A stretch of DNA of 63,811 nt, filler included, from Ministeria vibrans ATCC 50519 (GCA_943704425.1; 5 parts of 5 records of this genome joined end to end with filler, not necessarily neighbours in it), one strand, 5' to 3'; numbered from the whole stretch's first letter, positions 2 to 28,833 are shown. Program-made: numbers and translations. The notes: a model not told the origin generated them from the letters alone.

Positions 2-3000
2 CAGCTGGTTGTCGCGTCGACGGCGCAGGCGCGCTGTGAGAAACAGACGGAACTGGACGAGTTGGAACGCAAATTCCACCGCACTTTGGACGAGGCAAAG
101 GCGGCGGCGGACGCCGAGATCAAGCGTCGGTACGACGAGGCGCATGCAAGCGTTGAGGCGGAGAACGATGCGTTGGTGCGCACGCGCGAGCGTATCGTGC
201 AGGAGCGCGCCGACTTTGACGCGGAGCTATCGACGCGACGCGCAGCGTTCGACTCGGAGCTCGCGAGCGAGCGTGAGCAGCTGCAGATGGGACAGCGGGA
301 TCTGGAGGAGCGTGCGGTGGCGTTTCAGCTCGCGCGCGACAAGGTTGAGGATGCAGCGCGTCAACAGCAGACGCGTTTCACAGTTGTCGTTGGCGAACGC
401 GCCTTCAAAATAACCCGCCGCACTGCCACGGAGCGCGAGCCCGCCTCTCTGCTTGCCGCCATCGCCGAGGGACGGGTTCCGCCTGCGGCCTCCCGCGACA
501 ACGACACTGACGACGACGACGGCAGTGTCTTCTTTGACCGCGACGGCGACCTCTTTGCCCGCCTGGTCTTCTACCTGCGCACGGGCGTTGCCACCAAGGC
601 GTCGTCCAACGAGGAGCTCGAGTGCCTCATTAGCGAGTGCGACTTTTACGAGATGCACAACCTTGCCAAGGTGCTGCGTGAGCGAAGTCATCTCATGCAA
701 CTCTCCGACGATTGCATGGCGCTCTCGCTCACCGTCCTGCCAACACGTCTGCCCTGCTGCGATCTGCGCGCGCTCAAGCTGACCTACTTCAACTTTGGAG
801 CCGGTGCGCAACTTCCACGCTGTATCATGAGCAAGATGGACTTGCGGGGCGTGTCGATGCCGAGGGCAACGCTGCGCGAGGCACGACTGGACGGTGCGCA
901 AATGACCAAGGCAGACCTGTCCGGCGCAGTGGCCGTGGACGCAGACCTGAGTAGCGCTGATCTGACGTGCGCTGTGTTGGTGGACTGCGATCTGACGGGA
1001 GCCAAGATGGCCGGGGCGAATCTGCGCAAGGCGAAACTGGACCGGGCCGTGCTGGCCAAAGTTGACCTTTCAAGCGTTTGCTTGCATGGCGCGTCGCTTC
1101 TGAACTGTGACTTGAGCGGCCGCGACCTCAGTGGATGCGACTTGTCGTATGCGAACCTATCACGTGCGAACCTGTCGGAGGCGAATTTGTCGCGAGCCAA
1201 TCTCACCAAGGCCGTTGTCAAAGGAGCGAACTTGACTGGTGCGAATTTCACTTGTGCAGATCTGACGCATGCGGATCTGTCGGGCTCGAACCTGACCAAA
1301 GCAACGCTCACCTCGGCGACACTGGTGCAAGCCAATCTCAGCAAGACAAAGTGGACGGGGGCCAAGGCTGCGAAAGCAACACTCACACGGTCGAATCTGA
1401 CGGACGCTGACCTCACGAACGTCGACCTGACCTCGGCCAACTTGCATCAAGCAAACTGCCCAGGTGCCAACCTCACCAACGCGCGCCTCACAAAGGCAAC
1501 ACTCACGCAGGCAAAGCTTGCCAAGGCGAAATTGCTCAAGGCTGAAGCAGGCGGTGCGTCGTTTGCGTCAGCTGATCTTTCGGGCGCAAACCTTGCCAGG
1601 ATCAATCTGGCGTCTGCCAACCTCACTCAAGCGAACTGCACGGGCGCCTCCTTGACCTTTGCGACGCTCACCCAGGCAACTCTCACCAAGGCGAAACTTA
1701 CCAAGGCGAATCTATCCAAGGCTGACGCAACGGGCGCATTTTTTCCGTCGTCTGTGCTGTCGAACGCTGACCTGACCAGCGCCACCTTGTCGTTGGCCGA
1801 TTTCTCTGGAGCAAACTGTTCGAGCGCCAAATTTATTGGCGCGGTGTTGACCAAAGCAACACTCGCCAAGTCGAAACTCATCAGTGCGGATCTGTCCAAA
1901 TGCAACGCATCGGGTGCATCGTTTGAGCAGGCGAACTGTGCGGATGCAAACATGTGTCGGGGAAATTTCAGCGGCGTCAACTTTGACACCGCCGTGTTGG
2001 ACGGCGCAACTCTTGACAACGCAGACCTGACCGACGCCACGCTCACCAAAGCGCAGTGCGGCAAGGTGATCATGGACTCGGCGACCTTGACTCGCGCAAA
2101 CCTCTCAGACGCGTTTTTCCCCCAAGCCTCTCTCACGGCAGCGATCCTCACAGGGGCGACGATGCATTGTGCTGTGTTCACAGGCGCTTCATTTATGGAG
2201 GCAACCGTTACCAACGCGGATCTGACAGGCTCGGAGTTTGTTTCCTCGAATTTTCAGGGTGCTACTTTGTCGTCAACGGATCTGACTCGTGCCAACTTTA
2301 CTGATGCGAATTTAGCCAAGGCGAGGATGACGGGCGCAACCCTGACCGGGACTGTGTGCGAAAAGACTGTCTTGGTGGGTGCCAATTTGAGCGGATTGGT
2401 GTTCTCTGGCGTGGATTTGCGCGGTGCAGACTTGTCTGAGGCAAACGTCACTGGTGCGTCGTTAAAAGCGGCCCGTCTGGAAGGCGTGCTTCTGAAGAAG
2501 ACTGACCTGCGCGCCACGGCGCTGTCCAACTGCGACCTGTCCACCGCCATCTTGTTGGGTGCCAACATGAGTGACATGGATTTGTCGAGTGTGACTTTGG
2601 TTGGGGCAGATTTGACAGGTTGTGTGTTGCGTGGGGCCAAGCTGCCGCGGGGAATTTCTCCTGCAGGTGCCGATATTAGCGGCCATGCATTCTCGTCTCT
2701 CAACCTTTCTCGCGTCAATTTTGCAAAGTGCAAGCTTGTTGGCTGCAACTTTGCCGGTGCGACCCTTACTGGCGCCCGCTTTAAAGAAGCTGATCTGAGC
2801 AAGGTAGATATGACGGAAGCTGATCTGACGGGAGCAAAACTGACGGGAGCCGATCTGACGGGAGCTGGTCTGATGGGAGCGAATCTGACGAGAGCCGATC
2901 TGTCGGGAGCGAATCTGACGGGAGCGAATCCGCTGGGAGCGAACTTTTCGATAGCCGATCTGTCGGGAGCGAATCTGACGAGAGCCGATCTGTCGGGAGC

Positions 3001-3412
3001 GAATCTGACGGGAGCGAATCTGACGAGAGCCGATCTGTCGGGAGCGAATCTGTCGGGAACGAATCTGACGAGAGCCGATCTGTCGGGCGCCGATCTGTCG
3101 GGAGCGAATATATCGGGAGCCGATCTGACGAGAGCCGATCTGCCGGGAGTCAATCTGTCGGGAGCGAATCTGACAGAGGCGAATTTGACGGAAGCTGACC
3201 TGTCTAAAGCGACCCTTTGCAAAGTTATATTGGTGAACGCGACGATCTCGAAAACGGTCGTCAACGGTGCTGTTGTCAGAGACTTGCCTGATTGCTATTC
3301 TTCTCTCTCCTGCCCCTTCCGCCTCGCCCCCTCTGGATGCAGTGATACTCTCTACATCAGGACGAGGCATGGAGAAATCATCTTTGTGTGTTCCCGCCAT
3401 GGTCAAGAATGA
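2..3412 (+). CDS. Coiled-coil + BTB/POZ (KCTD-type) + very long pentapeptide-repeat protein (KCTD9-like), 5'-partial
   Basis: Frame is open from the window start. The BTB_2 signature 'FFDRDGDLFARLVFYLRTG...LISECDFYEM' is followed by ~880 aa of A(N/D)LxX pentapeptide repeats. Ends at TGA 3410-3412. Confidence 0.9.
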   Translation, partial: QLVVASTAQARCEKQTELDELERKFHRTLDEAKAAADAEIKRRYDEAHASVEAENDALVRTRERIVQERADFDAELSTRRAAFDSELASEREQLQMGQRDLEERAVAFQLARDKVEDAARQQQTRFTVVVGERAFKITRRTATEREPASLLAAIAEGRVPPAASRDNDTDDDDGSVFFDRDGDLFARLVFYLRTGVATKASSNEELECLISECDFYEMHNLAKVLRERSHLMQLSDDCMALSLTVLPTRLPCCDLRALKLTYFNFGAGAQLPRCIMSKMDLRGVSMPRATLREARLDGAQMTKADLSGAVAVDADLSSADLTCAVLVDCDLTGAKMAGANLRKAKLDRAVLAKVDLSSVCLHGASLLNCDLSGRDLSGCDLSYANLSRANLSEANLSRANLTKAVVKGANLTGANFTCADLTHADLSGSNLTKATLTSATLVQANLSKTKWTGAKAAKATLTRSNLTDADLTNVDLTSANLHQANCPGANLTNARLTKATLTQAKLAKAKLLKAEAGGASFASADLSGANLARINLASANLTQANCTGASLTFATLTQATLTKAKLTKANLSKADATGAFFPSSVLSNADLTSATLSLADFSGANCSSAKFIGAVLTKATLAKSKLISADLSKCNASGASFEQANCADANMCRGNFSGVNFDTAVLDGATLDNADLTDATLTKAQCGKVIMDSATLTRANLSDAFFPQASLTAAILTGATMHCAVFTGASFMEATVTNADLTGSEFVSSNFQGATLSSTDLTRANFTDANLAKARMTGATLTGTVCEKTVLVGANLSGLVFSGVDLRGADLSEANVTGASLKAARLEGVLLKKTDLRATALSNCDLSTAILLGANMSDMDLSSVTLVGADLTGCVLRGAKLPRGISPAGADISGHAFSSLNLSRVNFAKCKLVGCNFAGATLTGARFKEADLSKVDMTEADLTGAKLTGADLTGAGLMGANLTRADLSGANLTGANPLGANFSIADLSGANLTRADLSGANLTGANLTRADLSGANLSGTNLTRADLSGADLSGANISGADLTRADLPGVNLSGANLTEANLTEADLSKATLCKVILVNATISKTVVNGAVVRDLPDCYSSLSCPFRLAPSGCSDTLYIRTRHGEIIFVCSRHGQE
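2810..3190 (+). repeat. Coding 15-bp tandem repeat (GC(C/G)(G/A)ATCTG(A/T)CG(G/A)GA) encoding ADLSG/ANLTG/ANLTR pentapeptides
   Basis: Near-identical 15-nt units such as gccgatctgtcggga and gcgaatctgacgaga occur in tandem. Confidence 0.9.
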
Positions 3413-6226: not shown

Positions 6227-7407
6227 ATGGTTGTTCTTGTGCAAGTGGCGCTTCTCATTGTCGCTGCGGCGCTGGCGAGTGCCAAGCCTTCATTTGGGCT
6301 GCACCATACCCATCCTCATTTGTTTGCGCCGCCGCACCATCGGGCGCGGTTTGGGGCCGTCATGGCAACCCGCCGCGCGCGTCCCCTTGCCCCCGCTCCC
6401 CCGCTGATCGTGCCCACCGAATTCGGCGCGGATCCCACTGGCGTGCAAGACTCAACACATGCCCTGCAGACTGCGATCATAACGGCCCTCTCACGGCACG
6501 CTGCGAACCACAGTCTCGCGGACGGCATTGTCGACTGCGGCGGAGCGACGGTGGACTTGGAGGGCGGAGACTACCTCGTGAGCGCACCCTTGGTTGTGCC
6601 GCCGGGCTATGGAAACCTGCGCATTCAGCGGGGCACGCTGCGTGCGTCGACGCGCTTCCAAGGAGGCGACTTTCTCCTGCGGATTGGATCGGAGGTGTGC
6701 ACGACGAACAAGCAGCAGTCGTGCAACGAGAACATTGGTCTGTCGGAGCTGTTCATTGATGGTGCACAGCGCACGGGCGGGGTGTTCATCGGAACAACAA
6801 TGGGCGCTAATGTCGGGCCCCAAATGTTCTTTCTGGGCTTTGTGGGTGCGGGACTGCGCGTAAAAGGAGGCCATGAAGTGATGGTGCACGAAGCGTGGCT
6901 TGGCGAGTACCTGTACTCCGACCCTCGCAAGGCCAACACAACTCTGGTGACCGCGACAGGAGTGGACATTCTTGGGAACGATCATGTTGTGAGCAACGTG
7001 ATCGTGTTCAGTGCGCGCATTGGCCTCTCTGTCGTGGGGGGCGCCAACTTCTTTGTGGGCGTGCACACCTGGAACCTGGCGACAGCGTACAATGGCACGG
7101 GGATCTACCTCAATGCGCCGTCGGCAACCGCCAACCGTTTTGTCGGCTGTTACCTTGATTACAATGACTTTGTGCTGGCGAGTGCGTCTCATCTCATTTT
7201 TGTCGATGGGTTCTTTCTCGGCGGAGCAAAATTGGTCATGCGCGCAAATGGCCCTCACGACACCGTGCGAGGCGTCACAGTGACCGGCTGCCAGTTTACC
7301 AATGGTACGATTGTATTGTTAAGGAAAAGGAAATGCGGTGGGGTTGTTTGTGGGTGGAACGTGACTGAATGAGATCAGAGTGGAACCCGTAATAATTAAT
7401 GAGACTG

Positions 7408-7482
<75 letters not shown>

Positions 7483-11356: not shown

Positions 11357-11616
11357 TTATAGCGACAAATGACCGGTTGCATTGAGAACGGTGAGGGTGA
11401 CAAAGAGAACGTAGAGAGCAATGAGGACAAAGCCGTAGGCTCGCGGTGGAGTCATTTTGAAGGCGGGAAAGACGATGAGAGTGGCGATGAGCGAGACGCC
11501 CAGAAAGATCCAAGCCAGCTTGACTTTGGCAAAGTTGGAGGAGTTGACGTCAAATGTGAATGATTGCGGGTAGTGGCGAGAGCACTGCAAGAATAAGAGA
11601 AAGAAAGAAAGAAAGA

Positions 11617-11704
<88 letters not shown>

Positions 11705-12245
11705 NNNNNNNNNNAAAACAAAGTGATAGAGAGAGAGAGAGAGAGAGAGAGAGGAGGAGGAGGAGGGAGAAAGAAACAAAGTGATAGAGAGAGAGAGAAA
11801 CAAAGTGATAGAGAGAGAGAGTAGAGAAATAGAAAGAGAAAAAGGAGGGAGAAAGAAAGTAATAAGAAAGAAGAGACAACGTGATAGAGAGAGGAAAAAG
11901 AAACAAGGTGAAAGAGAGAGAAATGAGGGAGAAAGAAACACCGCAATAGAGAGGAGGAAAGAAACAAAGCGATAGAGAGGGAGAAAGTAACAAAGTGCGA
12001 GAAAGGAGAAGAAAAGAGAAAGAACGAAAGAAATAAAATAGAGAGGGGCAAGTTGGAGTGAGTAAGTGTGATATGTGTCATCATACACACTCTTTCGAGT
12101 GCGTAAGTGGGATTCAAATAAAAATAATGATACCCAAGCGGTGAGGGAGATGCCAAGGCCAAGGACATCATTGAGAAGGGGACTACCAAGGCACGAGGCA
12201 ACGCCCATTGCAGGGAACCCAGCGCGAGCCACGGCCGTGTCCTAC

Positions 12246-12303
<58 letters not shown>

Positions 12304-15640: not shown

Positions 15641-18600
15641 ATGAAGCTTGTTTTGCTGGCTTCTCTCGCGCTTGTGTGCGTCTGTCTCGCTGAGCAGATG
15701 CCCGAGCCCGAACGCGAGCCTGCAAACGCCCTGGACCTTCTCAGCGACGGTCCGCTTGCCCATTATACTGACGTCACGCGACCCGCTCGCTCACCCCAAA
15801 ACCTCTCTTGCAGACGAACTCTTCGGCCTGGACGAGGTCCATTTCGCCAGGGACAACGTCCAGCTTGACATTGATACACGTAGCCACGGCGTGTGCTCCA
15901 GGTACGCTTGGTGTTCGCTTGAGTATGCAATTGACGTATGTCGTTAGACTTTTTTTTTTTTTTTGAATTTGCATCGTTTCCCCGCGCACCCTCATGCGGC
16001 TTTGCATCACTCCTGCCATTGCTCGCTAGCCCATTGTTGGTCCATTAGACACCTTCTAGCCTGCTTAGATTCGCAATTGGCGCGTTGTTTTGCGACAGAA
16101 TTCCATTTTTGATTCAGTGACGACAGCTTGATCGGAACTAAAACGAGAGACGACAAACATCTGAAAAGAGTCACATTCCTCAGTCAACGCCATCCCATTC
16201 TATCGACACACACTCTCTCATATTACTCCCTACCGCCGTATGCCGTTTCGCCTACCGCTCGTGACACACCAACGTTGACCGTTTTTTCTTTGTCTTCTTC
16301 TAATTGTTCGTCTCATCTCGCCACTTATTTTTTTTTCTTTTTTTTTCCTCCTTTTTTTATAGTAACCCATGTCAGCAAGGAGGCACATGTAACAGCTACA
16401 CGGCGAGCTCGCGTCGTCGTCGCCGCACCTCGTACAACTACTTTGCTTGCTCATGTCTCTCCGGCACGTACGGAACACGCTGTCAGAGTGGCTCCACCGG
16501 CGCCTGCTCCTCCAACCCTTGTCAACACAACTCCAACTGTATTGACGCCGTCAACAACGGCTTCTCCTGTCAGTGTAGCTCTGTGTACGCCGGAAAGACG
16601 TGCAACGTTGTCAAAGCATGCGTCTCCAATCCGTGTCGCAACGGTGGCGATTGTGTCGACTCCGTCTCCACCGCCTCCAATCCCGTCGACATTGTCCTTG
16701 TCCTCGACAACAGTGGTAGCATGTCTTCGTCGTCCATCTCGTCGCTCAAAACGGCTGTCAAATCTTTGGTACATCAGAAACACGATTAATGTAATATTCT
16801 AACACGTCTTTCTTTGATTAGGTGAATTCGCTGAGCTCAAATGATCGCGTCGCCATCTATGCGTTTGGCAGCTCGAGTGGCTCAACCGGAGGCCAGACGA
16901 CGACGATTCCCAAGCGATTCCTTGCTTTTACTACCATTGGCGCCTACGACAGCTACTACTCGACGGGTCGTGGCCGTGTGCTCCATTACCTGGACAACGT
17001 TGTCTTCTCCACCCTACACTGGACTCCTCTTTACGACACCATCTTCTCTGCGATTGAGTACGGTGTGTCGTCGTCGCGCGACACTGCCAGTCCCATTGTC
17101 ATTGCCATGACAGACGGTTCTGACACCTCTTCGTCGGTGAACCATTACGCAAACAATGACGCCAATGAGTTTCCCGACGGTGACTCGGCCGGCCGCATTG
17201 GTAACAACGACTATAACAATCGCGACGACTACGGCTCCGCCTACCGCGGAAGCGACAATATCGATGGTGGTATTTGTAACTCACCCATCCCCGTGTACAC
17301 CGTCGGCCTGGGCATTGGCTCGTCCGATGCCAACAAGCTGCGCGAGGTCGCCCTCACCTCGCCCGGCGGTCAGTACTACGGTGCCGCCAGCAGTAGCGAT
17401 CTCATTGGTGTCTACTCGTCCATTTCCGACTCGGTTGCCGTCTCTTTCACATGTAACTGTCGCTCCGGCTACACCGGCGTCAACTGCGAGACAGCCGTCA
17501 ACCACTGTGACTCGAACCCATGCCGCAATGGTGGTACCTGCCACAACACTGCCTCCGGCTACGCCTGCACCTGCCCCTTCGGCTTTGGTGGCACCCTCTG
17601 CCAGACTGTCACCAACCCTTGCTACTCGAACCCGTGTCAAAACGGTGGCACTTGCATCACCTATGGTACCAGCTTCTACTGCAACTGTCCCACCGGTCGC
17701 ACCGGCAACCTTTGCCAGACCATCATCAACAACTGCGCTTCGAACCCGTGCGCCAACCAGGGCACGTGCGTCTCCACTGCAAACGGCTACACCTGCTCGT
17801 GCCGCACCTTCTACACTGGCGAACGCTGCACCGTCACCAAAGCTTGCCTTTCCAACCCGTGTCGCAACGGTGGCACCTGTGCTGACGTCGTGTCGACCAC
17901 GCCCGGTAGTAGCTCGCTTATCGACCTTGTTTTCATGCTGGACAACAGCGGTAGCATGACCAATACGGACGTGAGCGCCCTCAAGAGTGCTGTCATTGCA
18001 ACCGTCAACGGCCTGAAGGACACCGACCGCGTTGCCATTTTCAGCTTCTATGGCCTCCAGGGACAAATCAATGGCAACGCCAACGAGTGGGGTCCCAAGC
18101 TCTTCTTGGGTTTCACCACCCTGGGTGCGTACGACTCGTCGTATGGCACTGGCCGTGGCCGTGTTATCCACTACGTCAACAATATCATCTTCCAGTACGA
18201 CCACTGGACGCCGCTGTGGGACACGCTCTTCGACTCGATCAAGTATGCTATCACATACAGGCGCTCCGACGCGCGCGCCGTCGTTGTCGGTATGACCGAT
18301 GGCGAGGACACCTCAAGCGGTACCAACAACTACGGCAACGATGACTCCATCGAGTTCCCCGATGGCGACTCCAACGGACGCCTTGGCAACAACGACTACA
18401 ACACCTTGGATGACTACGGCTCCGCCTACCGCGGTTCCGATCAGATCGACGGTGGCCTCTGCAACGCTCCCATTGCCGTGTACACCGTCGGCCTGGACGT
18501 TAGCTCGTCGAACGCCAACAAGCTCCGCGAGGTCGCCCTCACATCCGACGGCGGTCAGTACTTTAGCGCTGTCTCCAACAACCAACTCTCGGCCGTGTAC

Positions 18601-21600
18601 CAAAGCATCGCCGACAGTGTCTCGGTCACGTACGAGTGCTCATGTCCCGCCGGCTACACCGGGGACGACTGCCAGACGCTCATCAACCCGTGTGGTTCGA
18701 ACCCCTGTCGCAACGGCGGTGTCTGCTCCCAGAGCGGCACCGGCTACACCTGCACCTGCACCTGCGGCTACGACGGCGTCACCTGCGCTTCGGTCAAGAA
18801 CGAGTGCTCCTCCAACCCGTGCGAGAACGGCGGCACCTGCTCTGACGGCACATGCTCTTTTTCTTGTGCTTGCCGTGCCGGTTATACCGGCGCGCGCTGC
18901 CAAACCAACATCAACGAGTGCGCGTCGAACCCTTGCCAGAATGGTGGTACCTGCACCGATTATGTCAACGCATACGCGTGTTCGTGCCGTTGCGGCTACT
19001 CCGGCCCGCAATGCCAGTGGAACAACAACGAGTGCTCGTCAAACCCTTGCAAGAATGGCGGTACATGCAACGACGGTATTTGCAGCTACACCTGCAGCTG
19101 CCGACCCGGCTACTATGGCGACCGTTGCGAGACCAACATCAACGAGTGCGCCTCGAATCCGTGCAAGAACGGCGGCACTTGTCACGACGGCGTTAACGGT
19201 TACACTTGCTCCTGCAAGTGTGGCTACGAGGGAGCGACGTGCGCCACCAACACGAACGAGTGTGCCTCGAACCCGTGTCTCAACGGTGGCACCTGCTCCG
19301 ACAACGTCTGTGGCTACACCTGCGGCTGCAAGACGGGCTACTCGGGCGATCAATGTCAGTTGAACAACAACGAGTGCGCGTCGAACCCCTGCAAGAATGG
19401 TGGCACTTGTGTCGATGGCATTGCCAGCTACATCTGCAAATGCCGATGTGGTTGGGCCGGAAGCCTGTGTGAATCAGCTGTCAACGAGTGCGCGTCGAAT
19501 CCGTGCCAGAATGGCGCAACTTGCAACGACGGTGTCTGCGGCTACACCTGCACTTGTCCGCCCGGCTTCTACGGCACCTACTGCCAAGCAAACACAAACG
19601 AGTGCGCATCAAACCCCTGCCGCAACGGTGGCACCTGTACCGACCTCGTCAATGGCTACACCTGCTCATGCCCCTGCGGTTACGAGGGTGTCACGTGTGC
19701 CACGAACACAAACGAATGTGCTTCGAACCCCTGCCTCAATGGTGGCACCTGTAACGACCGCGTGTGCGGCCACACGTGTACGTGCATGCCCGGGTACACC
19801 GGCAACCGTTGCGAGACCAATGTGAACGAGTGCTCCTCGAACCCGTGCCGCAACGGCGGAGTCTGTATCGACAGTGTCAATGGCTTCTCCTGCTCGTGTC
19901 CGTGCGGCTGGACCGGCTCGCTGTGCCACTCGCAAATCGACGAGTGTGCCTCTAACCCGTGCCGCAACGGCGCTACCTGCCTTGATCGCACCTGTGGGTT
20001 CAGCTGCAAATGCGCCCCCGGCTACTACGGCTCGCGCTGCCAGGCTGACATCAACGAGTGTGCCTCGAATCCGTGCCAGAACAGCGGTACGTGCCACAAC
20101 CTTGTCAATAGCTTTGCGTGCTCGTGTCGATGCGGCTACGAGGGTGTCACTTGCGGCACCAACGTGAACGAGTGTTCGTCTAACCCGTGCGCTAACGGTG
20201 GCACTTGCAACGACGCCATCTGCGGCTACTCGTGCACCTGCCCCCCCGGCTTCACGGGCCCTGAGTGCAAGACCAATGTGAACGAGTGCGCCTCCAACCC
20301 GTGTGCCAACGGCGGAACTTGCCACGACGGTGTCAACGGCTACACGTGCTCGTGCAAGTGCGGCTGGATGGGCACGCGCTGCACCGTCAACGTCAACGAG
20401 TGTGCTTCGAACCCGTGCCAAAACGGTGCAACCTGCAACGACGCCACTTGTGGCTACACTTGCACCTGTGCTCCTGGCTACTTTGGTACACACTGTCAGA
20501 CTAATGTGAACGAGTGTGCGTCGAATCCGTGCCGGAACGGCGGTACTTGCACCGATCATATCAATGGCTACACCTGTGCCTGCAAGTGCGGCTACGAGGG
20601 CGCTAACTGCGCCACGGAGACGAACGAGTGCGCTTCCGGCCCGTGCCACAACGGTGGTACTTGCTCCGACAGTGTGTGTGGCTACTCTTGCGGCTGCAAG
20701 GCCGGCTACACCGGCACTCATTGCGAGACCAACATCAACGAGTGCGCCTCGAACCCGTGCCAGAATGGCGGTGTGTGCGACGACCGTGTCAACGGCTACT
20801 CTTGCTCGTGTGCCTGCGGCTGGACCGGCACCCAATGTACTTCCAACATCAACGAGTGCGCGAGCAACCCGTGCCAGAACGGTGCCACCTGTAATGATGC
20901 CACTTGCGGTTACACTTGCACTTGTGCGCCTGGCTACTTTGGCACCAAGTGTGACTCGGATGTGAACGAGTGTCTCTCGAACCCATGCCAGAACGGTGGT
21001 ACCTGTACGGACCGTGTCAACGGCTACACATGCGCCTGCAAGTGCGGCTACGAAGGCGCCACGTGCGCGACCAACACCAACGAGTGCGCGTCGGCTCCTT
21101 GCCAGAATGGCGGCACTTGCAGTGACTCGGTCTGCGGCTACTCGTGTGGTTGCAAGGCCGGCTACACCGGCACCCACTGTGAGACTAACATCAACGAGTG
21201 CGCCAGTAACCCGTGCCGCAACCAGGCGACTTGTGTCGATGGAATCAACAGATACACATGCCTGTGCAAGTGTGGTTGGACCGGAACCCATTGCGACAGT
21301 AACATCAACGAGTGCGCCTCGAACCCGTGTCGCAACGGCGCTACTTGTGTCGACAGCACCTGCGGTTACTCTTGCCAGTGCGCGCCCGGTTACTTTGGCA
21401 CACACTGCGACTCCAATGTGAACGAATGCAGCTCAAACCCCTGCCAGAATGGCGGTACCTGTACCGACGGCATCAACGGCTACACCTGCTCGTGCGCTTG
21501 CGGATGGGAGGGCACTCACTGTGCGTCGAACACCAACGAGTGCGGATCGAACCCATGCCAGAACGGCGGCACTTGCTCGGATGGCGTGTGTGGCTACGCT

Positions 21601-24600
21601 TGCTCGTGCAAGGCGGGCTACACTGGCACCCACTGCGAGACGAACGTCAATGAGTGTGCGTCAAACCCGTGTCGCAACGGCGCTACCTGCGTCGACGGTG
21701 TCAACGGTTACTCCTGCTCATGTGCCTGCGGATGGAATGGTGTTCACTGCCAGACGAACATCAACGAGTGCTCGTCGAACCCGTGCAAGAACGGCGCCAC
21801 TTGCAACGACGCCACTTGTGGCTACACTTGCACTTGTGCACCGGGCTACTTTGGCACACATTGTGACTCGAACGTCAACGAGTGCGCCTCCAACCCTTGT
21901 CTCAACCAAGGCACCTGCCACGATGGCATTAACGGTTTCACCTGCTCTTGCAAGTGCGGCTGGGAAGGTGCTACGTGCGCCACCAACACCAACGAGTGTG
22001 CGTCGAACCCGTGCCAGAACGGCGGAGCTTGCAGCGACTCGGTCTGCGGCTACTCTTGCTCGTGTGACGCCGGCTACACCGGCACGCACTGCGAGACGAA
22101 CGTCAACGAGTGCGCCTCAAACCCGTGTGTCAACGGCGACTGTGTTGATGGCGTGAATGGCTACACTTGCAACTGCGAGTGCGGCTGGAACGGCGTGCAT
22201 TGCCAGACGAACATCAACGAGTGCTCGTCGAACCCGTGCAAGAACGGCGCCACCTGTAATGATGCCACGTGCGGTTACACGTGCACCTGTGCGCCGGGCT
22301 ACTTTGGCACGCATTGCGACTCGAACATCAACGAATGCGATTCGAGTCCCTGCAAGTTTGGCGGTACCTGTCACGACGGCATTGACAGCTTCACGTGTAC
22401 CTGTGCTTGCGGTTATGAAGGTGCCACGTGCGCCACCAACACCAACGAGTGTGCGTCGAACCCGTGCCAGAATGGTGCTACATGCAGCGATGAGGTGTGC
22501 GGCTACTCGTGCGTCTGCAAGAGTGGTTTTGTGGGTACCCATTGTCAGACGAACGTCAACGAGTGTTCTTCAAACCCTTGCCGCAATGGCGCCACTTGTG
22601 TTGATGGTGTCAATGGCTACACATGTACCTGTGCTTGCGGCTGGTACGGCGCTTTGTGCCAGTACAACACCAACGAATGTGCGAGCAACCCTTGCAATAA
22701 TGGTGCGACATGTAACGATCAGACATGTGGCTACACGTGCACTTGTGCACCTGGCTACTTTGGCACCCACTGCGACTCGAACACCAACGAGTGCGCGTCG
22801 AATCCTTGCCAGAATGACGGCACTTGTCACGATGGTATTAACATGTACACTTGCTCATGCAAGTGCGGCTTCGAAGGCGTCAACTGCGCCACCAACACTA
22901 ACGAGTGCGGATCGAACCCGTGCCAGAACGGTGGCACTTGCGCAGATGGTGTGTGCGGCTACGCTTGCTCGTGCAAGCCTGGCTACACTGGCACCCACTG
23001 TGAGACAAACGTGAATGAGTGCGCGTCGAACCCGTGCCGCAACGGGGCTACCTGCGTCGACGGTGTTAACAGTTACTCCTGCTCTTGCGCCTGCGGCTGG
23101 TACGGTGCTCTTTGTCAGCACAACACCAACGAGTGCGCCTCGAACCCGTGCCAGAACGGTGCCACCTGCAATGATGGAACGTGTGGTTACACTTGCACTT
23201 GTGCTCCTGGCTATTTTGGCGCTCTGTGCGACTCGAACACGAACGAGTGTGACTCGAACCCGTGCCAGAACGGCGGTACATGTCACGACGGAATCAACGG
23301 CTACACTTGCAGCTGTGCTTGCGGCTATGAAGGTGCAAACTGTGCCACCAACACCAACGAGTGCGGTAGCAACCCGTGCCAGAACGGCGGGTCTTGCTCT
23401 GATGGCGTGTGTGGTTACACATGTGGCTGCAAGGCAGGTTACACCGGAACCCACTGCGAGACGAACGTGAACGAGTGCGCCTCAAACCCGTGTCAGCATG
23501 GCGCCACCTGTGTTGATGCTGTTAATAGCTACTCGTGCACCTGCGCCTGTGGCTGGACTGGTGTTTACTGCCAGACGAACATCAACGAGTGCGCCAGCAA
23601 TCCTTGCCAGAACGGCGCTCGTTGTGACGATGCCACGTGTGGCTTCACTTGCAAGTGTGCCCCGGGATACTTTGGCACACTGTGTGACTCGGAGACGGAC
23701 GAGTGTGCCAGCAACCCTTGTCAGAATGGTGGCACTTGCCACGATTCGGTCAACGGTTACTCTTGTGAGTGCGCTTGTGGCTGGGAGGGCACGCATTGTG
23801 CGTCCAACACCAACGAATGCGCTTCGAACCCGTGCCAGAACAACGGCGTGTGCAGCGACAGCGTCTGCGGCTACACTTGCAGCTGTGCCAACGGTTACGC
23901 AGGAGACGACTGTGAGACCAACATCAACGAGTGCGCGAGCAACCCGTGCCAGAACGGCGCGACGTGTAACGATCAGGTCAACGGCTACGAGTGCGCCTGC
24001 ACCTGTGGCTGGTCTGGCACTCACTGTTCGGTCAACATCAACGAGTGCGGCTCGAATCCTTGCCAGAACGGCGCCACATGCCACGACGCGACGTGTGGCT
24101 ACACTTGCACGTGCGCTCCGGGTTTCTTCGGCACCTTGTGCGATTCGGATGTAAACGAGTGTCTCTCAAACCCGTGTCAGAACGGCGGTACTTGCAGTGA
24201 TCTTGTCAACGGCTACACCTGTTCGTGCGCCTGCGGATGGGAGGGCACTCACTGTGCGTCGAACACCAACGAGTGCGGATCGAACCCATGCCAGAACGGC
24301 GGCACTTGCTCGGATGGCGTGTGTGGCTACGCTTGCTCGTGCAAGGCGGGCTACACTGGCACCCACTGCGAGACGAACGTCAATGAGTGTGCGTCAAACC
24401 CGTGTCGCAACGGCGCTACCTGCGTCGACGGTGTCAACGGTTACTCCTGCTCATGTGCCTGCGGATGGAATGGTGTTCACTGTCAGACGAACATCAACGA
24501 GTGCTCGTCGAACCCGTGCCAGAACGGCGCCACTTGCAACGACGCCACTTGTGGCTACACTTGCACTTGTGCTCCTGGTTACTTTGGTACCCACTGCGAC

Positions 24601-27600
24601 TCGAACATCGATGAATGCGACTCCAACCCATGTGCCAACGGAGGTACTTGCACTGACGGCATCAACGGCTTTACCTGCTCGTGTGCTTGCGGATGGGAAG
24701 GCACAACCTGCGCTACCAACACCAACGAGTGTGCGTCGAACCCGTGCCAGAACGGCGGAGCTTGCAGCGACTCGGTCTGCGGCTACTCATGCTCGTGTGA
24801 CGCCGGCTACACCGGCACGCACTGCGAGACGAACGTCAACGAGTGCGCGAGCAACCCGTGTCGCAACGGCGCGACGTGCGTTGATGGCGTCAACAGCTAC
24901 GTGTGTGACTGTGCGTGCGGATGGAATGGTGTTCACTGCCAGACGAACATCAACGAGTGCTCGTCGAACCCGTGCCAGAACGGCGCCACTTGCAACGACG
25001 CCACTTGTGGCTACACGTGCACTTGTGCACCGGGCTACTTTGGCACACATTGCGACTCGAACGTCAACGAGTGTGACTCCAACCCTTGCCAGAACGATGG
25101 AACATGCACTGATGGCATCAATGGATACACATGTGCTTGTACCTGTGGATGGGAAGGTGCTAATTGCGCTTCGAACACCAACGAGTGCGGATCAAACCCA
25201 TGCAAGAATGGCGGAAGTTGTACCGACAACACGTGCGGCTACATCTGCTCGTGTTCGCCCGGCTATACCGGAACACACTGCGAGACAAACATCAACGAGT
25301 GCGCCTCGAACCCCTGCCAGAACGGGGCGACGTGCTCCGACTTGGTCAATGGCTTCGAGTGTTCTTGCGCTTGCGGATGGGCCGGCACTCTGTGCTCTTC
25401 AAACATCAACGAATGTGGCTCGAACCCTTGCCAGAACGGTGCTACTTGCAACGACGCGACCTGCGGTTACACTTGCACTTGTGCTCCGGGTTACTTTGGC
25501 ACCCATTGCGACTCGGATGTGAACGAGTGTCTCTCGAACCCGTGTCAGAACGGCGGTACTTGCAGTGATCTTGTCAACGGCTACTCCTGTTCGTGCGCCT
25601 GCGGATGGGAGGGCACTCACTGTGCGTCGAACACCAACGAGTGTGGATCGAACCCCTGCCAGAACGGCGGTACTTGCTCGGATGGCGTGTGTGGCTACGC
25701 TTGCTCGTGCAAGGCGGGCTACACTGGCACCCACTGCGAGACGAACGTCAATGAGTGTGCGTCAAACCCGTGCGTCAACGGTGACTGTGTTGATGGCGTT
25801 AACGGCTACACTTGCTCGTGCGAGTGCGGTTGGTACGGCGCGCATTGTCAGCACAACACGAACGAGTGTGCTTCGAACCCGTGTCAGAACGGTGCCACTT
25901 GCAACGACGCCACTTGTGGCTACACTTGCACTTGTGCTCCTGGTTACTTTGGTACCCACTGCGACTCGAATATCGATGAATGCTTCTCGAATCCGTGTGC
26001 AAACGGAGGCACTTGTACTGACGGCGTCAACGGCTTTACCTGCTCGTGCGCTTGCGGATGGGAAGGCACAACCTGCGCTACCAACACCAACGAGTGTGCG
26101 TCGAACCCGTGCCAAAACGGCGGAGCTTGCAGCGACTCGGTCTGCGGCTACTCATGCTCGTGTGACGCCGGCTACACCGGCACGCACTGCGAGACGAACG
26201 TCAACGAGTGCGCGAGCAACCCGTGTCGCAACGGCGCGACGTGCGTTGATGGCGTCAACAGCTACGTGTGTGACTGTGCGTGCGGATGGAATGGTGTTCA
26301 CTGCCAGACGAACATCAACGAGTGCTCGTCGAACCCGTGCCAGAACGGCGCCACTTGCAACGACGCCACTTGTGGCTACACGTGCACTTGTGCACCGGGC
26401 TACTTTGGCACACATTGCGACTCGAACGTCAACGAGTGCGCCTCCAACCCTTGTCTCAACCAAGGCACCTGCCACGATGGCATTAACGGTTTCACCTGCT
26501 CTTGCAAGTGCGGCTGGGAAGGTGCTACGTGCGCCACCAACACCAACGAGTGTGCGTCGAACCCGTGCCAGAACGGCGGAGCTTGCAGCGACTCGGTGTG
26601 CGGCTACTCATGCTCATGCAATGCCGGCTACACCGGCACGCACTGCGAGACGAATGTCAACGAGTGTGCTTCAAACCCGTGTGTCAACGGTGACTGTGTT
26701 GATGGCGTGAATGGCTACACTTGCAACTGCGAGTGCGGCTGGAACGGCGTGCATTGCCAGACGAACATCAACGAGTGCTCGTCGAACCCGTGCAAGAACG
26801 GCGCCACCTGTAATGATGCGACGTGCGGCTACACGTGCACCTGTGCGCCTGGCTACTTTGGCACACATTGCGACTCGAACGTCAACGAGTGCGCCTCCAA
26901 CCCTTGTCTCAACCAAGGCACCTGCCACGATGGCATTAACGGTTTCACCTGCTCATGCAAGTGCGGCTGGGAAGGCGCTACGTGCGCCACCAACACCAAC
27001 GAGTGTGCGTCGAACCCATGCCAGAATGGCGGCGCTTGCAGCGACTCGGTGTGCGGCTACTCATGCTCATGCAATGCCGGCTACACCGGCACGCACTGCG
27101 AGACGAACGTCAACGAGTGTGCGTCAAACCCGTGTGTCAACGGCGCTTGTGTCGATGGCGTCAACGGCTACACATGTAACTGTGAGTGCGGCTGGGCCGG
27201 TGTCCACTGCACCACAAACATTGATGAGTGCGCTAGCAACCCGTGCCAGAATCTTGGCACGTGTGTGGATGGTACCTGCGGTTTTACTTGTACTTGCCGA
27301 CCGGGCTACTACGGCACCGTATGTGACTCGGATGTCAACGAGTGTGTCTCTAACCCCTGTCAGAATGATGGAACTTGCAACGATCTCGTCAATGGCTACA
27401 CGTGCAATTGTGCATGCGGCTGGGAGGGAACTAACTGTGCCACCAACACCAACGAGTGTGCGTCGAACCCGTGCCAGAACGGCGGAGCTTGCAGCGACTC
27501 GGTCTGCGGCTACTCATGCTCGTGTGACGCCGGCTACACCGGCACGCACTGCGAGACGAACGTCAACGAGTGTGCCTCAAACCCGTGTGTCAACGGTGAC

Positions 27601-28833
27601 TGTGTTGATGGCGTGAATGGCTACACTTGCAACTGCGAGTGCGGCTGGAACGGCGTGCATTGCCAGACGAACATCAACGAGTGCTCGTCGAACCCGTGCA
27701 AGAACGGCGCCACCTGTAATGATGCCACGTGCGGCTACACGTGCACCTGTGCGCCGGGCTACTTTGGCACGCATTGTGACTCGAACGTCAACGAGTGCGC
27801 CTCGAACCCTTGCCAAAATGCTGGAACCTGCACTGATGGCGTTAACGGTTACAGTTGCTCTTGCGCCTGTGGCTGGGAGGGAACACACTGCGCTACGAAC
27901 ACCAACGAGTGTGCTTCAAACCCGTGCCAGAACGGCGGCGCTTGCAGCGACTCGGTCTGCGGCTACTCTTGCTCATGCAATGCCGGCTACACCGGCACGC
28001 ACTGCGAGACGAACGTCAACGAGTGTGCCTCAAACCCGTGTGTCAACGGTGACTGTGTTGATGGCGTGAATGGCTACACTTGCAACTGCGAGTGCGGCTG
28101 GAACGGCGTGCATTGCCAGACGAACATCAACGAGTGCTCGTCAAACCCGTGCCAGAACGGCGCCACCTGCCACGATGCCACGTGCGGCTACACTTGCGCT
28201 TGCGCTCCTGGCTACTTTGGCACTCATTGTGACTCGGACACGAATGAGTGTGAGTCGAACCCGTGCCAGAACAGCGGAACTTGCACCGACTTGGTCAACG
28301 GATACGAGTGTGCTTGTGCCTGTGGATGGGAGGGTGCCACGTGCTCCACCAACACCAACGAGTGTGCTTCGAACCCGTGCCAGAATGGCGGTGCTTGCAG
28401 CGACTCGGTCTGCGGCTACACTTGCTCATGCAACGCCGGATACACCGGCACACACTGTGAGACGAACGTCAACGAGTGTGCGTCAAACCCGTGTGTCAAC
28501 GGCGCTTGTGTCGATGGCGTCAACGGTTACACATGTAACTGTGAGTGCGGCTGGGCCGGTGTTCACTGCGCGACGAACGTTGATGAGTGCGCTAGCAACC
28601 CTTGCAAGAACGGCGCAACCTGTGTCGACGCTACTTGCGGCTACTCGTGCACCTGTGCCAATGGCTACTTTGGCACCGACTGTGGCTCTGACTACAACGA
28701 GTGCGACTCAAACCCGTGCCAGAACGCAGGAACGTGCACTGATATGGTCAATGGGTACTCTTGCGCGTGCGCGTGCGGCTGGGAAGGAACCAACTGTGCC
28801 TCGAACACCAACGAGTGTGCTTCGGCTCCTTGC
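15641..28833 (+). CDS. Giant secreted EGF-repeat protein (>4200 aa, roughly 95-100 EGF domains) with two inserted VWA domains; 3'-truncated by gap
   Basis: Signal peptide 'MKLVLLASLALVCVCLA'. Exons 15641-15749, 15814-15901, 16363-16768 and 16822 onward splice in frame. Two VWA domains carry MIDAS 'DNSGSM', 'TPL' and 'MTDG'. Long array of Notch-like 38-aa 'NINECxSNPCxNGxTC' repeats. Confidence 0.95.
18684..28833 (+). repeat. Coding tandem array: 114-bp EGF units grouped into 456-bp (or 453-bp) four-EGF higher-order repeats
   Basis: Matching DNA blocks recur at offsets of 453, 1365, 2733 and 4554 bp, for example 21508/24241 and 21868/26422/26875. Confidence 0.9.

Follow-up and report, generated by a model that had tools for sequence, protein, structure and literature searches.

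The window analysed here (the whole stretch of DNA, 63,811 nucleotides with filler included) carries part of a gene made up largely of EGF repeats, and this locus raises the question of whether a VWA domain can be housed inside an EGF domain without interrupting the EGF rod and, if so, what such a domain would do there. The initial annotation had proposed that a VWA replaces the turn of the Cys3-Cys4 hairpin of an EGF twice in this gene, and phmmer, Pfam and the two units agree with it: a VWA sits within the Cys3-Cys4 hairpin of an EGF in two composite modules, at 16619-17487 (with a 53-nt intron inside) and 17845-18672 (no intron). Both modules have the same order, Cys1-3 of an EGF, a VWA of about 245 aa and Cys4-6 of the same EGF, and the half-EGF strings reported to flank each VWA are present in frame. 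We consider it likely that the gene encodes a giant secreted EGF-rod protein with two nested MIDAS VWA heads, in each of which the EGF at the base is formed anew.

Features of the composite-module gene (positions in the window)
Feature	Position	Strand	Description
Proposed exon 1	15641..15749	+	ATG and signal-like sequence; hydrophobic core ends ...CVCLA, then acidic stretch
Proposed exon 2	15814..15901	+	acidic linker and Cys1 of first EGF; AG/GT borders
Proposed exon 3	16363..16768	+	rest of EGF 1, EGF 2, N-half of split EGF 1, 36 aa of VWA-1
N-half (Cys1-Cys3), split EGF 1	16619..16660	+	from translation
VWA-1	16661..17445	+	holds intron; 60% identical to VWA-2
VWA-1 MIDAS	DxSxS 16706-16720; T in 17017-17037; TDG in 17107-17124	+	
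Putative intron	16769..16821	+	53 nt, GT..AG, phase 0, within VWA-1 after helix alpha-1
Acidic insert, VWA-1	17125..17271	+	49 aa, Asp/Asn/Gly-rich, directly after MIDAS TDG
C-half (Cys4-Cys6), split EGF 1	17446..17487	+	from translation
Three intact EGFs between modules	17506..17829	+	ORF residues 229-336
N-half (Cys1-Cys3), split EGF 2	17845..17886	+	from translation and phmmer
VWA-2	17887..18630	+	248 aa, intron-free; Pfam VWA, fold match
VWA-2 MIDAS	DxSxS 17941-17955; T in 18202-18222; TDG in 18292-18309	+	
Acidic insert, VWA-2	18310..18456	+	49 aa; most conserved stretch of module; low model confidence
C-half (Cys4-Cys6), split EGF 2	18631..18672	+	Pfam EGF, phmmer
89 further EGFs	18691..28833	+	38-aa period, 76- and 152-aa super-repeats; ends with contig

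The two halves were compared with solved EGF structures using phmmer, in which residues 2-18 of unit 2 match residues 5-21 of the 40-aa EGF chain 5ky5_B and residues 263-277 match residues 22-36. Because the halves match adjoining residues of this chain, the EGF has been cut at one point (21|22) and about 245 aa inserted. Pfam EGF on the C-half spans profile positions 18-31 of 32, and the six Cys, the EGF spacing and the G-Y/F-x-G of PF00008 are all found, only as a domain split between Cys3 and Cys4. Together the halves amount to one EGF less about 4 hairpin residues, and they keep the register of the 38-aa array, with linkers of 5-6 residues to the neighbouring EGFs (elsewhere 6 residues in 90 of 91 junctions). 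The nested domain scores well above the cut-off of 23.8 bits for Pfam VWA PF00092 (35.7 bits for the unit alone, 40.8 in context), and both units keep the annotated MIDAS residues, seen as DNSGS, the T of HWTPL[YW]D and the D of MTDG. Units 1 and 2 share 60% identity across 223 aa (E 7e-99).

The modules belong to an open frame of more than 4004 aa that runs from 16822 to the end of the contig, with 92 intact EGFs in a strict 38-aa period; the contig (C159) stops at 28833, inside the repeat array. Upstream of 16822 lie three short exons, the first with a predicted signal peptide. Exons 1 and 2 are the putative start of the gene: exon 1 has its GT donor at 15750, exon 2 follows a 64-nt intron and ends ...GVCS in an EGF that exon 3 completes (exon 3 against Pfam EGF, E 3e-8), and the exon phases add to 0 at 16768. 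Reading through the 53 nt after exon 3 gives an in-frame stop, the frame picks up again at 16822, and paralogues on contigs C324 and C2741 have a frame break at the same position, so that the three genes have it in common; the GT..AG borders, the frame and the shared position suggest an intron in VWA-1. Introns in this gene range from 53 to 461 nt and have T-rich tracts. The VWA-1 intron, the VWA subfamily with its insert and the multi-copy family were absent from the initial annotation. The 89-EGF array is mostly of the calcium-binding consensus, with 84 matches to D/N-x-D/N-E/Q before Cys1 in the ORF with 92 intact EGFs, and the split EGFs are without this consensus, their Cys1 being preceded by ..TVTKA-C and ..NVVKA-C.

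Structure prediction had been put forward as the check on this architecture, and two separate AlphaFold models, one of the window unit with VWA-2 (pLDDT 77) and one of a 44% identical paralogue on contig C1379, have the same layout, with DSSP placing a strand at each hairpin position beside the VWA, as in intact EGFs. In the window unit these are strands 50-54 and 301-305, on either side of a VWA at about 62-300 with its helix at 284-299, followed by two short strands; the hairpins of intact EGFs in the same model (strands 12-17/20-25 and 332-336/339-343) match this layout. The pLDDT is about 70-75 for the half-EGFs, 53 for the N-side linker and about 50 for the acidic insert. In these models the strands of the halves are consistent with an EGF hairpin formed anew around the VWA. 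Foldseek finds VWA matches with a probability of 1.00, and VIA-align of model residues ~60-301 gives Z scores of 19.5 (4fx5), 19.2 (Mfa5) and 17.2 (VWF A2). The top fold matches are VWAs of prokaryotic pilus-tip and surface adhesins (4fx5, Mfa5, PitA, PilB, SpaC, RrgA), and further matches include VWF A domains, integrin I domains, MIC2, TRAP, collagen VI and mussel byssus PTMP1.

The composite module recurs at 37-49% identity on seven further contigs and is therefore not a chance arrangement; the 29.7-Mb genome holds about ten copies on eight contigs in about eight genes. Both half-EGFs are kept in all five paralogous modules with uninterrupted frames. Cys2-Cys6 do not vary among modules at 41-60% identity, 41-46% in the alignment of six, and these six also retain the GY/GF-x-G motif; each of them has a Cys1, but not in one register. 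All six modules with a full alignment carry the DxSxS, T and D of the MIDAS, and the T and D do not change in any of 17 aligned sequences. In the window gene and the paralogues on C524, C1379 and C996 the modules lie near the N-terminus, before long EGF arrays, and on C1679 about 1,400 residues stand ahead of the first module. The C524 paralogue appears from its sequence to be membrane-anchored, since 3' of the module its last EGF exon ends with one transmembrane helix, followed by a stop-transfer stretch of basic character and a short tail, where the link from module to transmembrane exon is drawn from the same strand and from EGF frames that continue over a small gap; the window gene is read only to the contig end and represents a 5' part. 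Metagenome contigs from two studies have identical module junctions. Other VWA genes in the genome are of the VIT-VWA type, none of them nested in an EGF. The genome also holds three integrin beta genes (Pfam Integrin_beta), on contigs other than that of the composite-module gene.

Among 1.84 billion representative proteins, the VWA has 78 matches at E<=1e-3, and the acidic insert is found elsewhere in only four prokaryote-type surface proteins (archaeal pilin N-terminus, CARDB, PA14); relatives in GTDB are archaeal MAGs and two bacterial MAGs. The eukaryotic modules and the four insert-bearing proteins cluster in the tree (support 92/89), and the eukaryotic clade is nested in or sister to the archaeal-type proteins, both being compatible with the tree (71/94 for the split). 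Judged by sequence, the VWA is a member of a rare subfamily, marked by an acidic insert by the MIDAS, that otherwise occurs in archaeal-type surface proteins. A single acquisition is probable, followed by placement in an EGF and dispersal of the composite module to about eight genes. A bolder scenario, in which we infer the direction of the gene transfer, is possible though rather doubtful: a unicellular relative of animals would have captured the VWA of an archaeal surface adhesin horizontally and inserted it into the Cys3-Cys4 hairpin of an EGF, yielding, independently of integrins, an inserted, disulfide-clamped, force-responsive MIDAS head that tips giant EGF rods with a transmembrane anchor and came to occupy a whole gene family. 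The organism does appear to be a unicellular eukaryote, as had been supposed. Its genome shows a mitochondrial code with TGA as Trp, and its ATP synthase beta has its nearest counterparts in animals and in an entry under the label Colp12.

The gene product would be secreted, and probably located at the cell surface, running from a signal peptide through two EGFs, a module, three EGFs and a second module into a rod of at least 89 EGFs. We propose that the two halves pair beneath the VWA as a single EGF, in which a predicted Cys2-Cys4 disulfide would staple the VWA's N- and C-termini to each other. Because the halves would form one stapled EGF, the rod would remain unbroken and the VWA would be displayed sideways near its membrane-distal end. 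The VWA itself is a putative metal-ion-dependent ligand-binding head, with a MIDAS face that the conserved acidic insert may shape. Its last helix is modelled as entering the Cys4-bearing EGF strand with no linker between, and because the helix would run straight into this strand a pull on the ligand could reach it, perhaps by transmission like that in integrin I domains and in TRAP/MIC2. The EGF disulfide knot would bear the rod load, which would leave the VWA outside the force path of the rod, and force coupling would apply only to a pull on a VWA-bound ligand. We infer disulfide pairing in the Cys1-3, Cys2-4 and Cys5-6 pattern, surface display, ligand binding and force coupling for the module and a role as an adhesin and force sensor.

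The nesting may be real and the VWA still serve in self-assembly of a matrix or coat or in oligomerisation, as in matrilins and collagen VI, or in plain metal binding, a reading that we regard as unlikely. It would fit the VWAs of collagen VI and mussel byssus PTMP1 among the fold matches, the giant repetitive rods that are typical of matrix components, and an acidic insert that could be a structural calcium-binding element. However, the best fold matches are prokaryotic adhesins, the VWA is closest in sequence to surface proteins of archaea that have pilin, CARDB and PA14 domains, the MIDAS is complete in every module aligned in full, and one paralogue is apparently membrane-anchored, although all of these counter-points are compatible with homophilic binding.

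It is very unlikely, in our assessment, that the half-EGFs are vestigial stubs or flexible linkers left by recombination between EGF and VWA sequences, with the VWA interrupting the rod. Their pLDDT is only moderate in both models, but the invariant cysteines and the retained glycine-aromatic motif of six modules, the sum of the halves to one EGF in register with the array and the strands flanking the VWA at hairpin positions all argue against this. The N- and C-termini of a VWA adjoin each other, as is established for integrin I domains, which also speaks against stubs or linkers. In addition, laminin shows that the Cys3-Cys4 site accepts a globular insert (PMC5338690). It is hardly credible that the arrangement is an artefact of mis-assembly that fused a VWA gene with EGF repeats, a pseudogene, or a long intron-like stretch whose removal by splicing restores a plain EGF, even with a contig that stops within the repeat array and one metagenome allele of a paralogue in which a stop codon falls right on the VWA/C-half junction. 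Against it stand about ten diverged copies at eight loci, six fully aligned modules in uninterrupted frames (including frames of 4004 aa and 9064 aa) and identical junctions in two independent metagenome assemblies, and the insert of 744 nt is high in GC and coding-like, whereas the introns are shorter and T-rich. Because the MIDAS and the acidic insert are conserved at the protein level, the VWA is under purifying selection.

The nested-head reading that we prefer can be set beside several known systems. The initial annotation knew of no description of this architecture; our literature search found no published account of EGF-VWA nesting, and the databases searched held no such protein from any other organism. 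The nearest sequence relatives of the VWA, giant surface proteins of archaea (Halobacteriota and Thermoplasmata MAGs; 42-50% identity), differ in that they are without EGFs and carry the VWA free-standing among Ig-like/CARDB domains, within prokaryotic gene neighbourhoods. Matrilins, AMACO and invertebrate collagen-VI-like VWA-EGF proteins also combine the two domains extracellularly, but as complete domains in tandem. Feature neighbours in an Atlas search included VWA+EGF clusters from annelids and molluscs. Of the sequence hits to this VWA, the animal one inspected, the Lineus collagen-VI-like P0005, and the multi-VWA P0019, P0040 and P0046 have plain tandem VWAs with mucin-like linkers. Membership of the matrilin type, with tandem complete domains and a C-terminal coiled coil, was rejected, as the domains here are nested.

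The TRAP and MIC2 proteins of apicomplexans carry a MIDAS VWA head distally on a stalk, with the VWA termini tied to a beta-ribbon. They would resemble the window protein as surface adhesins of unicellular eukaryotes with a MIDAS head at the distal end of the stalk, and are among the fold matches (4f1j, 4okr, 4oku), but their stalk is of TSRs instead of EGFs, their VWA is terminal and tandem, and apart from the fold there is no sequence relationship. Should the organism be a unicellular holozoan, the gene family would bear on the build-up of adhesion machinery before animals and on a possible archaeal gene contribution to it.

For the insertion site, the laminin analogy drawn in the initial annotation is exact: in the laminin alpha and gamma short arms and in perlecan domain III, a globular L4 domain lies between Cys3 and Cys4 of an LE repeat within a long EGF-like array that remains unbroken (PMC5338690). 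Insertion into this loop is documented for laminin-type modules with L4 guests (PMC5338690). The host there is an LE domain with eight cysteines instead of a classical EGF with six, the guest is a CBM35-like beta-sandwich of unknown function instead of an alpha/beta VWA with a MIDAS, and the laminins are animal proteins without sequence kinship to the module. Membership of the laminin LE/L4 family was rejected because, although the site is shared, the host has six cysteines and the guest is a VWA. What is new relative to laminin is a classical EGF host, a VWA guest and a protist, and if this second, unrelated case is true, the Cys3-Cys4 hairpin would be a general permissive site in EGF rods. 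The module would also give protein engineering a compact template from nature for presenting a domain side-on along a rigid stalk of EGFs.

Integrin alpha-I domains (in the beta-propeller) and beta-I domains (in the hybrid domain) are likewise MIDAS VWAs in a host loop, and they match the fold (8ce9, 1aox, 7p2d, 6bxb). They differ in that the host of the composite module is an EGF hairpin, and its VWA is archaeal-type with an acidic insert, implies no heterodimer partner and is at most a candidate for allostery; membership of the alpha-I/beta-I class was rejected on the ground that the host is an EGF in an EGF array. In both systems the termini lie opposite the MIDAS face and the C-terminal helix has a direct connection to the host. 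The composite module would be a natural parallel to the insertion of I domains in integrins, with a MIDAS domain suspended from a loop of its host and its final helix tied into that host.

In the Ministeria vibrans gene carried on contig C159, the VWA domain is nested within an EGF domain, and this nesting is a real, conserved feature. The gene encodes two such composite modules (units 1 and 2), each consisting of the first half of an EGF (Cys1-3), a VWA and the second half of the EGF (Cys4-6). The strings quoted for the half-EGFs and VWAs in the initial annotation are present in the window, and its claim that a VWA had been inserted into a split EGF, twice, is borne out by the way in which the parts align. 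When unit 2 was compared with all solved chains using phmmer, its two flanks fell on the same 40-aa EGF chains: residues 2-18 on chain residues 5-21, and residues 263-277 on chain residues 22-36. Since these two stretches adjoin in the chain, the split lies at one point of the EGF, where 248 aa stand in for about four hairpin residues. The Pfam EGF profile matches the C-half at profile positions 18-31, and the Pfam VWA match exceeds its cut-off. The two units are 60% identical; searches with unit 1 were carried out exon by exon.

Features of the EGF-nested VWA gene (window positions)
Feature	Position	Remark
Proposed exon 1	15641-15749	begins with a classical signal peptide
Proposed exon 2	15814-15901	upstream of the large open frame
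Proposed exon 3	16363-16768	upstream of the large open frame
Unit 1, N-half EGF	16619-16660	
Unit 1, VWA	16661-17445	contains an intron
Putative intron	16769-16821	53 nt; connects exon 3 to the large open frame
Acidic insert, unit 1	17125-17271	
Unit 1, C-half EGF	17446-17487	
Unit 2, N-half EGF	17845-17886	
Unit 2, VWA	17887-18630	
Acidic insert, unit 2	18310-18456	
Unit 2, C-half EGF	18631-18672	

The DNA of the window is eukaryotic nuclear, with short GT..AG introns and microsatellites. The large open frame begins at 16822 and continues for 4004 aa to the end of the piece with no stop, and since the contig itself ends with the frame still running, the gene is truncated at its 3' end. The phases of the three upstream exons add to zero at 16768; the splice sites of these exons and of the short intron are predictions from the sequence. 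Adjoining genes in the window encode a BTB and pentapeptide-repeat protein, an OGG1 N-terminal domain, a DNL zinc finger and a DUF829 protein. The first of these is a 1116-aa open frame (62-3412) in which a T1-type BTB domain is joined to some 900 aa of pentapeptide repeats (Pfam E 1e-179). In or beside introns of the neighbouring genes, at about 7380-7480 and 11450-12300, there are long microsatellites of the (GT)n/(CA)n and (GA)n/(CT)n types, and a short run of N occurs inside the (GA)n/(CT)n one.

The remainder of the 4004-aa frame consists of 92 intact EGFs with a rigid period of 38 aa, made up of 32 aa and a 6-aa linker in 90 of the 91 junctions. The N-x-N-E-C calcium-binding consensus gives 84 matches across these EGFs. 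The split EGFs keep register with the array, yet are without this consensus. Within the array (18691-28833), self-identity at lags of 76 and 152 aa is nearly as high as at 38 aa, corresponding to super-repeats of two and four EGFs, and plain six-cysteine EGFs alternate with EGFs bearing two extra cysteines. As contig C159 stops within the array, the number of repeats is probably under-assembled.

To the MIDAS, the metal-binding site of the VWA, each unit adds an insert of 49 aa rich in Asp, Asn and Gly, placed straight after the TDG of the site and carrying the motifs N-x-Y, EFPDGD, DD-Y/F-G and IDGG. No stretch of the module varies less, and outside this genome the insert is common to four archaeal-type surface proteins only. 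Because it begins right after the third MIDAS loop it should be on the binding face, where it may form a calcium-binding cap; it was modelled at low confidence.

We modelled one EGF, unit 2 and one further EGF together with AlphaFold (355 aa, 17-row alignment; mean pLDDT 77, pTM 0.67). The VWA core is modelled with confidence, and model residues ~60-301 match solved VWAs with Z of 19.5 (4fx5) and 19.2 (the Mfa5 pilus tip), followed by pilus adhesins, VWF A domains, integrin I domains, TRAP and MIC2 at Z 17-18. In the split EGF, DSSP assigns a strand at 50-54 before the VWA and another at 301-305 after it, then two short strands, and the intact EGFs have the same signature (strands 12-17/20-25 and 332-336/339-343). 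The proposal that the halves flanking the VWA make up one EGF thus agrees with the model of unit 2, in which they show the strand signature of their intact neighbours. The last VWA helix (284-299) continues without a linker into strand 301-305, and the linker on the N-terminal side (55-62) is short and of low confidence. A model of the paralogue on contig C1379, which is 44% identical, has the same layout (strand 52-56, VWA 64-290, strand 292-296). The models are consistent with the 1-3, 2-4 and 5-6 disulfides expected of the split EGF. A two-chain prediction, in which the separated EGF halves were each given with the neighbouring EGF, scored 0.17 and gave no verdict either way.

The module is not confined to this gene. 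In the assembly (29.7 Mb, 2860 contigs) it is found, in addition to the copies in the window, on contigs C524, C1679, C1379, C996, C324 and C2741, and in degenerate form on C2434; C1679 carries it twice, in an open frame of 9064 aa. The invariant positions of six aligned modules, which are 41-46% identical, include Cys2 to Cys6, the MIDAS residues and a long series of Asp, Asn and Gly residues. The module is a conserved composite unit and not an accident. A break in the frame after helix alpha-1 falls at the same position in unit 1 and in the modules of C324 and C2741. Long EGF arrays follow the module, itself close to the N-terminus, in the window gene, C524, C1379 and C996, and in C1679 about 1,400 residues stand ahead of the first module. 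On C524, in the same strand (L053:5301-7082, ~73300-75081), the last EGF exon leads into one transmembrane helix, followed by a basic stop-transfer stretch and ~60 aa of cytoplasmic tail. This exon points to a family of type I membrane proteins at the surface, with the VWA at the distal end, the anchoring of the C524 protein being presumed because a small gap and introns separate its module from the transmembrane exon. Between its module and the point where the EGF array resumes, the C524 paralogue also carries a long tandem repeat rich in Pro and Arg, with units like APVARRR (L050:4774-6696).

We also considered whether other VWA genes of the genome were nested and rejected this, as they encode VIT-VWA proteins that are not flanked by EGFs. 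A query containing EGFs yielded 4542 first-look candidates in the assembly, with dozens of open frames of 2000-9000 aa, indicating a massive expansion of giant EGF-repeat proteins in a 29.7-Mb genome. Three strong matches to Integrin_beta (PF00362; C749, C376 and C2390, E 1e-53 to 1e-65) point to an integrin toolkit alongside the EGF-nested VWA family. Mitochondrial cox1 contains 13 in-frame TGA codons, with TGA coding for Trp, and shares its contig with a small-subunit rRNA (C1523:31150-32493 and C1523:23400-24891). The 18S rRNA (C1833:34-1831) scores 1750 bits to the eukaryotic model and carries unusual substitutions where the molecule is normally conserved. For an exon of ATP synthase beta the best matches, at 84-87% identity, are in animals and in an entry labelled Colp12, which we take to be the name of a Syssomonas strain; by itself this match suggests no more than Holozoa or Opisthokonta. 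Together, the 18S, cox1, integrin beta and ATP synthase beta place the organism, with moderate confidence, among unicellular opisthokonts, and probably among holozoans. The HSP90 locus is partly N.

To assess the distribution of the module, an exhaustive HMMER pass was made over 1.84 billion representative proteins, which returned only 78 proteins at E<=1e-3, four of them reaching E<=1e-30. The best match (P0001) is encoded by a metagenome contig, L011, that is 99.75% identical in DNA to C1379, and a fragment match (P0039) by a contig, L015, that is 98.3% identical to C2741. These identities show that both come from the same species or a close strain, and rule them out as carriers of the module in other species. 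At L011:1084-1086 (JGI metagenome 3300040761) there are three adjacent C-to-T differences from C1379 (CCC to TTT), which make a TAG stop precisely where the VWA meets the C-half EGF; variation between strains, a pseudogenised allele and an artefact of sequencing are all possible explanations. Apart from these two metagenome fragments, module proteins were absent from the protein collections searched. When homologues of the 4004-aa frame were sought over the module alone, none of the proteins of 2200-7000 aa carried it. Scanning metagenomes for the pattern of the module alignment turned up no relatives, and the clusters returned by an Atlas feature search were all of generic VWA or tandem VWA+EGF type and scored below 0.9. 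A match from the animal Lineus (P0005) and other multi-VWA matches of unnamed origin are ordinary tandem VWAs.

The matches ranking next are prokaryote-type surface proteins, among them P0002, which combines an archaeal pilin N-terminus with CARDB and PA14 and is encoded among densely packed genes of prokaryotic kind. In a scan of species-representative genomes, the prokaryotic relatives (23-34% identity) came from archaeal MAGs (Halobacteriota, Thermoplasmata and unclassified) and from two bacterial MAGs only. The maximum-likelihood tree places the eukaryotic modules and the four insert-bearing proteins together (92/89), inside the prokaryotic VWAs, and a single origin of the eukaryotic modules is compatible with the tree, being recovered in 88% of bootstrap trees.

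Given the full MIDAS and nearest kin, by fold and by sequence, that are surface adhesins, we read the VWA as a binding head, which would hold its ligand in a metal-dependent manner. Nesting in the Cys3-Cys4 hairpin would allow the Cys2-Cys4 bond of the EGF to clamp both ends of the VWA, so that the rod would remain continuous, with the head projecting sideways and load along the rod bypassing it. Force applied through a VWA-bound ligand would instead reach the terminal helix, which is continuous with the EGF strand. A pull on the terminal helix is what switches integrin I domains and TRAP/MIC2, and we hypothesize that the same switching geometry may apply to this module.

The initial annotation was aware of no description of the architecture, and we likewise found no account of a VWA nested in an EGF in the literature searched, of which coverage was incomplete; matches to "split EGF" concerned split EGFP. 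The feature would gain interest should the placement among holozoans and the archaeal origin be borne out. Matrilin-type proteins also combine VWA and EGF, in tandem only, and integrin I domains provide a precedent for an inserted VWA, although their hosts differ from EGF. The closest precedent is that of the laminin L4 domains, which interrupt an LE module between its Cys3 and Cys4 and leave the LE array undisturbed (PMC5338690). The insertion site is the same in both systems, but the laminin host is an eight-cysteine LE and that of the module a six-cysteine EGF, and the guest folds differ. The module works like laminin L4/LE, and is not a member of it.
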